Position numbers and translations under genes: made by a program. Under the pieces are notes generated by a model. It made no database searches and was not told the origin of the DNA. It saw only the letters and a program-made list of their open reading frames with translations. DNA of 64,000 nt, taken from positions 782,403 to 846,402 of the forward strand of contig NW_027192195.1 of NCBI RefSeq assembly GCF_041956535.1, read 5' to 3'. The DNA is from Calcarisporiella thermophila CBS 279.70. Lineage: Eukaryota; Fungi; Calcarisporiellomycota. Below are positions 1 through 5,013 of this stretch, in pieces (position 1 is the stretch's first letter; each line of letters starts with the position of its first letter).

Positions 1-737
1 GGCACAGTTGATTGTATTATATTCCATTAGCATTCAGCTGAATCGCTGCAATTATCATGAAATGTAGTGAGTGCTACTTACGGGCTAATTAACGTGAATC
101 GATGGCAAAATTGAGGAGCATTATGTTCCATTAGCATACAAGCTGCAAATATCACGGGATCTGGTTCTACTTACCGCCTATTTAGATTAAACAGATGATA
201 GAAATAACCCATTCGGATTTTCAGCATTCATCAAGACGAAAGTATATATAATATGGATCAACACTTACGTTCTTTTAGTGAAAATGAATTGCGTAGATTA
301 TAGGATCTAAATTAGCTATATAAAAGGAAAATTGACAAGATGCTATGAAACTTACCTTCTATTTTGGATCAGCAAATAATTGTGTTCCCATAGTTATTTT
401 TAAAATTAATTAAATAGTGTATATTTTTTTTTTAAACCGGAGTACTTGCCAACTATTTATTCAATTGCAAAGGAAATGAGGTATAGCAACCCATCAGTAT
501 TCATGTATACTTGGCTCATCTTCAATTTCGCGATTATACTTACGGACTAATTGTACGGATGAATTTTAAAGATGAAAGTATAATTGAGTCGTAGTGAAAT
601 GTTATGCAGTATTAGACTTCAAATCTACCTGATCCATGGATCTTTTGAACTTCAATATTGGGAATAATGCTAGCTGTAGCAAACTGCTGAGTTGCGAAAA
701 CAACCACGAGACTGACGGCTAATTTGACAATTTGCAT
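1..737 (-). CDS. Secreted protein gene with an array of 3-nt microexons (3' part lies beyond the window start)
   Basis: ATG at 737. Exon 1 (737-629) encodes MQIVKLAVSLVVVFATQQFATASIIPNIEVQKIHGS plus 1 nt, signal-peptide-like. It is followed by AG|NNN|GTAAGT units at 546-544 (TCC), 452-450 (TTG, GC donor), 358-356 (AAG), 271-269 (AAC), 177-175 (GCG) and 84-82 (CCC), which splice to VLEERAP. Unspliced read-through hits TAA six codons past the last complete exon-1 codon. Confidence 0.85.
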
Positions 738-855: not shown

Positions 856-863
856 TTTTTATA
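856..863 (-). promoter_or_regulatory. TATA box of the microexon gene
   Basis: TATAAAAA on the - strand about 120 bp upstream of the ATG at 737. Confidence 0.5.
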
Positions 864-3492: not shown

Positions 3493-5013
3493 ATGTTGGC
3501 CGCTGCAGATATCCCATCTCCACCCCTCTCCACACCCAAGACATTGGCATCATCCGCATACAGGCAAACCAAACTCGAGGAATTCCTCTCCGCCGTCGAG
3601 CACGAGTTCACTCTAAGTGCAGAGAAGCTCCATAGGATCGTGGACGGCTTTCTCGACGAACTCGAGGTCGGCCTCCGACAACCGGGGATCACGCGGAACC
3701 CCTCTTTTATCACGAACCGCCCCGATGGGAGCGAAACCGGAATCTACCTCGCAATCGATGTGGGCGGCACAAACATGAGGGTTGCAGCAGTGCAGCTGCT
3801 GGGCGAAGGAAAGGTGAACGTGTTACAGCACAAGCATGTCGTTTCCGAGGAGCTCAAGCGCGGGAAGGCAGAGGCGTTCATCGGCTGGATTGCCGATAAT
3901 ACGGCGAGTCTGGTCACCGAGATGGGCGAGGCGCAGGAGACCCTGTTCATGGGAGTCGTCTGGAGCTTTCCATTAAAGTAAGTGGCGCCGCTGTATACCC
4001 CTTGTTCTAGGAGAAGTGCTGACGCATCTCCTTATTGTGTGTGTGTTAATTCCAGCCAAACGGATATCAATAAAGGCATTATCGAGAGCATGGGCAAGGG
4101 CTTCACGGTGGTGGAGGATCTCAAGGGGAAGGACCTCAGCACCATTCTGCAGACGGCCTTTGAGGATCGGGGGCTGCCCATCAAAGTGTCCGCCATCCTG
4201 AATGACACGGTGGGCACGCTTGTCGCGCACGCCTATCAATGCCCGCTGACCACGATGGGCATCATCTTCCCCACGGGAACCAATGCAGCCTACATGGAGA
4301 AGGTCTCCAACATCGTCAAGCTCCCCTCCAGCTACAAGGTCACAGACCCCTCTTCAGACCGCATGATCCTCAACACGGAGTGGGACGTGTACGGCCGCCC
4401 CGACTATCTCCCCATGACGCGGTACGACTTGGAGCTGGACACAGCTTCGCCCATTCCCGGATTCCAGGTCTATGAGAAGATGAGCTCCGGAATGTACCTC
4501 GGAGAGCTCTGCCGGCGCATCCTGGTAGACGCGGTGCAAGTCGGGAGGTGGCTCAATGGCCACCTCCCCGCCGGCTTGGATGAGCCTTTTCGGTTCAAGA
4601 CGGCGTTCATGAGCGAGATCGAAGCGGACCAGAGCGAAGATTTAGCCCTGACTCGTAGGCTGCTGGAAGAAAACTTCCAGTTTGGAGCGCTCCTCTCCTT
4701 GGAAGATGCGCACCTGGTGCGATGGGTATGCCAGCTAGTAGGGAATCGTTCGGCCTCGCTGTTGGCTGCCGCCATTGGCTCGCTCGTGCGCAAATCTGAA
4801 GGAGGAGGGTTCGCGCCAAAAGGCGAGCCCATCGTCATTGGAATGACGGGCTCGGTGTGGGAATTTTATCCGAACTTTGAAGAAAGGATGCGCTACCACC
4901 TGGCAAAACTATTTGGCCAGGAGGCATGCGCGCGCGTCGAGGTCGGGATTTCACTCGATGGAGGTTTGGTCGGAGCTGCGCTGGCAGCCATGTTGGGCTC
5001 GAGAACGTTATGA
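3493..5013 (+). CDS. Hexokinase-family sugar kinase, atypical (GlcNAc-kinase/HxkC-like clade); 2 exons (3493-3977, 4056-5013)
   Basis: Motifs YLAIDVGGTNMRV, WSFP, MGKGF, NDTVGT, TGTNAAY, NTEW and EKMSSGMYLGE. A GTAAGT...CAG intron (3978-4055) joins the two ORFs in frame. Confidence 0.93.

Follow-up and report, generated by a model that had tools for sequence, protein, structure and literature searches.

Three-base exons in series in a family of predicted secreted-peptide genes of Calcarisporiella thermophila

Can a protein be encoded by exons of only three nucleotides, placed in series and each separated from the next by an intron of its own? This question is raised by the minus strand of the first 737 nucleotides of a 64,000-nucleotide stretch of DNA (the window; contig NW_027192195.1, here C5, positions 782,403 to 846,402) of Calcarisporiella thermophila CBS 279.70, a thermophilic saprobe (PMC11393059) of soil. 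Its assembly consists of SOAPdenovo scaffolds built from short reads (PMC11393059); in it we found seven tyrosinase loci and no CotH, in agreement with the published account of the species (PMC10079182). An initial annotation had described here a signal-peptide exon followed by at least six consecutive microexons of 3 nt. These had been read as the processing junction of a secreted protein, and the gene as a fungal counterpart of the micro-exon genes (MEGs) of Schistosoma.

The exon-intron ladder

In Table 1 we list the features of the window gene; the coordinates, triplets, donors, acceptors and intron lengths first reported for the six microexons all proved exact. If a donor-like site is defined by at least 5 of 6 matches to GTAAGT, the minus strand of positions 1-628 has six and no more, each exactly 3 nt past an AG. 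When the same walking rule is applied to the ~1,130 donor-like sites at window positions 1001-64000, never more than two are chained, which bears out that the ladder is very unlikely to be a product of chance. A genome scan for the ladder pattern, which had been proposed as a check, was carried out with a three-unit consensus and returned 46 matches, all of them in one gene family; with the reversed control there were none. In the genome as a whole, neither ladders with 3-nt exons and shorter introns nor ladders with 6-nt exons rose above control level. Tandem Repeats Finder, run on the window, left the ladder undetected. Overall, the ladder is a real feature that is specific to one gene family.

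Table 1. Features of the window gene (window positions unless a C5 coordinate is given)
Feature	Position	Strand	Remarks
TATA-like box	857..863	-	126 nt 5' of ATG; putative function
Exon 1, coding part, 109 nt, phase 1	629..737	-	ATG at 737; signal peptide and start of pro-peptide (predicted)
Intron 1, 82 nt	547..628	-	most similar (67%) to intron 1 of the C5:14 kb paralog
Microexon 1, TCC	544..546	-	register agrees with intronless paralogs
Intron 2, 91 nt	453..543	-	CTGAT branch-like motif 42 nt before 3' end
Microexon 2, TTG, then GC donor	450..452	-	triplet also in C5:14 kb paralog and intronless C10
Intron 3, 91 nt, GC-AG	359..449	-	donor is GT in paralogs
Microexon 3, AAG	356..358	-	flanking signals; comparison with intronless paralogs
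Intron 4, 84 nt, AAG acceptor	272..355	-	CTAAT 41 nt before 3' end
Microexon 4, AAC	269..271	-	same triplet in intronless C10
Intron 5, 91 nt	178..268	-	GT-AG
Microexon 5, GCG	175..177	-	finishes Arg codon of processing site
Intron 6, 90 nt, repeat-unit type	85..174	-	CTAAT 47 nt before 3' end
Microexon 6, CCC	82..84	-	within predicted mature region
Intron 7, broken by 2,870-N gap	1..81	-	gene extends outside window
Last microexon	~C5:779,430	-	found past gap
Terminal exon, Gly-Asn-stop	from C5:779,314	-	two codons

The first position of the window abuts the run of 2,870 Ns. Extension to the left, as had been advised, brings up more ladder and the end of the gene: past the gap we found one further full unit (microexon CCG), a last intron and the terminal exon, and the introns flanking the gap (intron 6 and the post-gap intron) are ~80% identical. 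As the ladder resumes after the gap and the 3,051 nt between microexon 6 and the last microexon correspond to ~31 units, the gene probably holds ~37 three-base exons, ~30 of which are deduced from the length of the N gap, itself an estimate of the scaffolder. The count of at least six was thus an understatement, and the mature region of the window gene is mostly inside the gap. Two further copies, on C30 and C54, are likewise gapped within the ladder. Gaps inside the ladders on C5, C30 and C54 are expected if near-identical units collapse in assembly.

A pattern search yielded an ungapped paralog at C5:14,923-9,325 (minus strand), in which a homologous exon 1 of 109 nt is followed by 57 consecutive 3-nt exons. 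Microexons make up 57 of its 59 exons, its introns measure 80-126 nt (median 94), and AG, GT and a distance of exactly 3 nt are kept in 57/57 units. All of its microexons are phase 1-1, as are the six visible in the window. The frame is open from the ATG to a stop two codons into the terminal exon (Cys-Arg-stop), and the window gene has a similar terminal exon. In the public model of this complete paralog (VTP21DRAFT_9095) extra upstream exons are added and exon 1 reads into intron 1 and stops; it contains zero microexons, in line with the earlier remark that standard gene finders miss the structure. For the window locus, no annotated protein was found among the homologue-search matches.

Copies of a single ~94-nt unit make up the introns of the complete paralog, with a mean column identity of 0.68 and a minimum of 0.35. 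Units 7-9 recur as units 14-16 with identical exons and an intron identity of 79-96% (a block duplication), and units 42 and 43 are adjacent copies. Introns 1, 2 and 4 of the window gene are each most similar to the intron of the complete paralog with that number, and the unusual AAG acceptor of window intron 4 is also present in the C5:14 kb, C8 and C29 copies.

Coding character of the central triplets

The units are plainly tandem repeats that collapse in assembly, as the gaps on C5, C30 and C54 illustrate, and the public model of the complete paralog ends a few codons into intron 1. It might be argued that the array is an intron-derived minisatellite in which GT and AG are held by concerted evolution and nothing is spliced, the gene consisting of exon 1 with either read-through or a jump to the last exon. 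Concerted evolution would, however, homogenise the three central bases too, yet those vary most. In the complete paralog the pairwise identity at exon positions 1 and 3 (codon positions 2 and 1) amounts to 0.25 and 0.28, below all 94 intron columns, and in unit pairs with introns that are at least 80% alike these two positions agree in just 34% and 23%. Moreover, units 1-5 are old: the paralogs agree on them position by position, and the motif that they spell is intact in paralogs that have no introns. We consider the minisatellite highly improbable.

The middle position of the triplet, which is the wobble position of the codon, behaves differently from the splice consensus. At position -2 of a donor an A is expected, opposite to the pyrimidine seen at exon position 2 of the complete paralog, with C 42 times and T 8 times among the 57 units (50/57, or 88%, pyrimidine). 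The mature part of the intronless paralog on C24 has C or T at 59 of 72 wobble positions, like the codon bias of the ladder.

The two intronless paralogs, on C10 and C24, carry the same leader and the same (V/A)(F/L)EKR junction as one continuous sequence, in a register that matches microexons 1-5 at every base. Immediately past the point that corresponds to the end of exon 1, the sequence is TCT TTG AAA AAC GCA in C10 and CTC TCG AGA AGC GCC in C24, next to TCC TTG AAG AAC GCG for the window gene and CCT TTG AAA AGC GCG for the complete paralog. Read in phase 1, these give VFEKR (C10), ALEKR (C24), VLEER (window) and AFEKR (complete paralog). The register supports the proposal that the first microexons spell the processing junction of a predicted secreted prepro-protein. 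The further proposal of an LE(K/E)R propeptide junction holds as far as a processing site is concerned; the window gene itself has L-E-E-R, a non-canonical LxxR site, and the intact paralogs have EKR.

Both paralogs are annotated as NCBI proteins (KAL1920356.1 and KAL1916344.1), and together they form one side of a branch (91/86) in an unrooted tree. Their upstream homology, with each other and with the rest of the family, ends at about -100; two intron-bearing copies also lose it early. This loss in C10 and C24 would fit retroposition of a spliced mRNA. The coding register is supported whether introns were gained or lost.

To the order of the exons we applied 5,000 shuffles. Compared with shuffled orders, the genomic order of the complete paralog gives a higher aliphatic helical moment (0.30 against 0.18, p 0.003), a longer uncharged run (38 against 15, p 0.002) and a lower amino-acid entropy (p 0.009), values that are only indicative because the units are related by duplication, hence not independent, and five statistics were tried. 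Exon order thus seems to yield a non-random amphipathic, uncharged block, with the same caution. The lack of stop codons was also considered as coding evidence and was rejected (P = 0.41 under shuffling).

Predicted product and copies of the family

The product would start with a signal peptide (exon 1 encodes a hydrophobic N-terminal core, judged by hydropathy only) and a short pro-peptide, followed by a Kex2-type cut after (L/F)E(K/E)R and the mature peptide. The mature part of the complete paralog consists of an acidic Asp/Pro-rich spacer and then a Cys-bracketed, uncharged, amphipathic stretch of ~37 residues that is rich in Gly, Leu, Val, Ile and Ser. Its mature region has two cysteines, and there is one dibasic site, as in each of the intronless paralogs. 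C10 and C24 likewise have mature parts that are aliphatic and rich in Gly.

For the intronless paralogs we found no homologue outside the own genome in a search of 1.84 billion representatives, NCBI proteins and the ESM Atlas, and no Pfam match. Because of the former, function is judged here from composition. A surface-active or self-assembling coat peptide of hyphae or spores is the likeliest predicted role, to which we give about an even chance. Second comes a membrane-active antimicrobial peptide, a tentative suggestion on the same compositional grounds; the remaining probability falls to other roles, for example signalling. The product may resemble repellents, chaplins or the C3-C4 loop of hydrophobins. 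Hydrophobins proper are set apart by their eight-cysteine pattern, against two cysteines in the mature part of the complete paralog, and the intronless paralogs have no Pfam match.

Kex2-processed pro-domain proteins form the K2PP class, and LxxR with Glu at P2 is among the sites tolerated by Kex2 (PMC8528282). The predicted sites of the ladder family are similar, since in K2PP a KR/RR or LxxR site also follows a short pro-region (LEER in the window gene; EKR in the complete paralog and in both intronless ones). With a single site each, the complete paralog and both intronless ones differ from KEP precursors, in which several repeated peptide cores lie between Kex2 sites. The Rep1 repellents of Ustilago are small amphipathic peptides that form surface amyloid on aerial hyphae (PMC3133707), and they share with the predicted product the signal peptide, a short pro-region, an LxKR/LxxR site and a small amphipathic mature peptide. 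Unlike Rep1 and other Kex2-processed peptides, the ladder product has no homology to any described peptide and its host is a saprobe.

A search of the own genome with exon 1 gave eight family matches, and a ninth member is a decayed copy on C8. On C17 (310,746 onward, plus strand; L016:1247-1830) a paralog combines the family leader with a 9-nt exon and a ladder-type intron. Its terminal exon, Cys-rich with repeated CC motifs, comes after a second KR site, and the donor of a possible third tiny exon is ambiguous. As far as can be judged from sequence, the family design is a conserved leader with a variable mature part, the C17 leader being joined to its Cys-rich terminal exon by ladder-type introns.

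The other copies are incomplete or decayed. On C30 (L010:5700-8600) we observed a 5'-truncated copy of the 3' end of the window gene and its flank, 93% identical and fused to MSH6 fragments, with a perfect 26-bp palindrome at the break, inside a ladder intron. On C54 (L012:2843-3080) a second copy of exon 1 and microexon 1 (94% identical, CCC instead of TCC) runs into a gap of 4,402 Ns; it might supply the 5' half that the C30 copy lacks. The C8 member (~18.7-19.6 kb, minus strand; L051) has a damaged exon 1 and a ladder that is broken after about seven units, by an interruption that by eye resembles a decayed Tc1/mariner-type transposase. The C29 copy (L013:7456-8456) has TTG at the start codon and has lost splice sites, and in the C33 copy (3,670 downward; L055) exon 1 is shortened and just two units can be recognised. 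The C8, C29 and C33 copies are thus damaged at donors, acceptors or the ATG, all of which the intact genes retain.

Family members are frequently found near gaps, contig ends or mobile elements. A Gag-like ORF (L049:1500-2100, minus strand), by eye probably from a Ty3/gypsy retroelement, lies ~700 nt 3' of the gene with 57 microexons. The downstream neighbour of the window gene is a convergent MSH6-like gene (by eye; L009:1-5000, plus strand). Its upstream neighbours, a hexokinase-like gene (3493-5013, plus strand) and an intronless heme O synthase COX10 gene (PF01040; 9371-10693, plus strand), have no tie to the ladder.

The family has a quick turnover and several decayed or truncated copies (C8, C29, C30 and C33), and in the window gene LEER replaces EKR and one donor is GC that is GT in the paralogs. 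One could accordingly ask if the window copy is a recent pseudogene or an unexpressed duplicate, with other family members alone active. Against this, ATG, frame, six acceptor-donor pairs, TATA-like box and terminal exon are all intact, LxxR with Glu at P2 is tolerated by Kex2 (PMC8528282), and the 94%-identical copy on C54 retains both exon 1 and microexon 1. A pseudogene at this locus is considered quite unlikely. The reading that we prefer, and hold to be likely on the sequence evidence, is a functional, lineage-specific gene for a secreted prepro-peptide, with a phase-1 spliceosomal intron splitting each codon after residue 36 and with exons spliced in order.

Splicing, origin and relation to known systems

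A perfect GTAAGT donor is present in 48 of 61 ladder introns against 1 of 13 ordinary introns, and ladder introns are longer (94 against 65 nt) and have a longer AG-free zone (57 against 21 nt), where it should be noted that the 13 ordinary introns are heuristic calls and that the ladder features are partly inherited from one ancestral unit. A CTAAT or CTGAT motif lies 40-49 nt before the acceptor in 37 of 57 introns of the complete paralog, and in introns 2, 4 and 6 of the window gene. Some units of the complete paralog have weaker donors (GTAATA, GTAACA and GTAAAG).

These signals suggest intron definition across ~94 nt: the donor is a strong GTAAGT, the branch point would lie ~44 nt before the acceptor, and the tract free of AG is long. 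Since two spliceosomes cannot flank a 3-nt exon simultaneously, introns would be removed one by one, and the main product would contain every exon, in order. As to the origin, a unit of ~97 nt (one 3-nt exon and one intron) may have multiplied by tandem duplication, both of single units and of blocks. With exactly three exonic bases per unit, every duplication would add one codon without shifting the frame. The peptide would subsequently be shaped by selection on those three bases, and the introns would keep their signals and otherwise drift.

With all exons symmetric (phase 1-1), any subset of them stays in frame. It might thus be proposed that the exons are real but frequently skipped and that the selected function is a cloud of single-residue peptide variants, in the way MEGs use their symmetric micro-exons (PMC4350168); the weaker donors mentioned above agree with such a diversity generator. 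The order-dependent amphipathic signal and the conserved L/F-E-K/E-R junction argue for selection on the fully included product instead. In addition, most donors are perfect consensus, skipping of exon 2 in the complete paralog creates a TAA, errors at plant microexons are more often intron retention than skipping (PMC8831610), and a soil saprobe meets no host antibodies. Frequent skipping as the selected function is considered unlikely, and ordered inclusion remains the preferred reading.

MEG exons measure 6-81 nt, mostly 15, with 10-20 per gene and introns of 0.1-5 kb; alternative splicing is documented and the genes are apparently restricted to flatworms (PMC4350168, PMC10526429). A lower limit of 3 bp for MEG exons is also stated (PMC10526429). 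Similar to MEGs, the ladder genes (known from DNA) have a signal-peptide exon, place most of their coding sequence in tiny symmetric exons, belong to a multigene family with fast turnover and are missed by automatic annotation. In contrast, ladder exons are uniformly 3 nt with up to 57 in series, and their ~94-nt introns are tandem copies of one unit. Even with a 3 bp exon limit, the introns (80-126 nt against 0.1-5 kb) set them apart, the host is a fungus, no sequence homology to MEGs was found, and the sequence speaks for ordered inclusion rather than combinatorial skipping. The proposed kinship with MEGs therefore holds as an analogy only (small symmetric exons and a secreted product), and fails on exon size, intron size, taxon and homology. 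The ladder genes are better described as extreme micro-exon-encoded secreted protein genes.

Closer in exon size are the microexons of fungi and plants. The Coprinopsis cinerea annotation has 27 three-base exons in 26 genes, and exons of 1-3 nt are spliced in fungi (PMC12230235). Microexons of land plants have strong flanking signals, the two flanking introns are removed consecutively and upstream introns are delayed (PMC8831610). Such microexons also merge into long exons through reverse-transcriptase-mediated intron loss (PMC12230235, PMC8831610). The ladder shares with these the tiny exons, the strong signals in flanking introns and, by our reading, consecutive intron removal. The difference is that theirs are single microexons amid ordinary exons; one ladder gene has twice as many 3-nt exons as the Coprinopsis annotation. 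In a literature search, conducted mostly outside subscription journals, we found no published gene with a run of 3-nt exons. For the 9-nt mini-exon of potato invertase, studied by Simpson et al. in 2000 and 2002, constitutive inclusion reportedly depends on two elements of the upstream intron, its branch point and its pyrimidine tract, both said to be unusually distant from the acceptor. That case differs from the ladder as it concerns a single mini-exon within a conserved enzyme.

Summarizing, the family fairly probably represents a new mode of gene construction. A tandem unit of codon plus intron would grow and rewrite a secreted peptide residue by residue, reverse transcription would occasionally freeze intronless versions, and skipping may add single-residue variants. 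As part of this, and with comparable credence, the spliceosome would build ~60 residues from a satellite-like array of 5.6 kb. If transcripts confirm the structure, the ladder genes would come close to a new gene category. If true, theirs would be the densest exon-intron structure that we found described, with one intron per codon for up to 57 codons. The ladder would then lend itself to natural tests of how far intron definition can go, of the order and fidelity of splicing over 3-nt exons and of intron gain through tandem duplication. At an accuracy of 99% per intron only ~56% of transcripts would be complete, and splicing fidelity, or selection on it, should therefore be measurable. More generally, apparent satellites and assembly gaps can conceal secreted-peptide genes that are missed by annotation pipelines.
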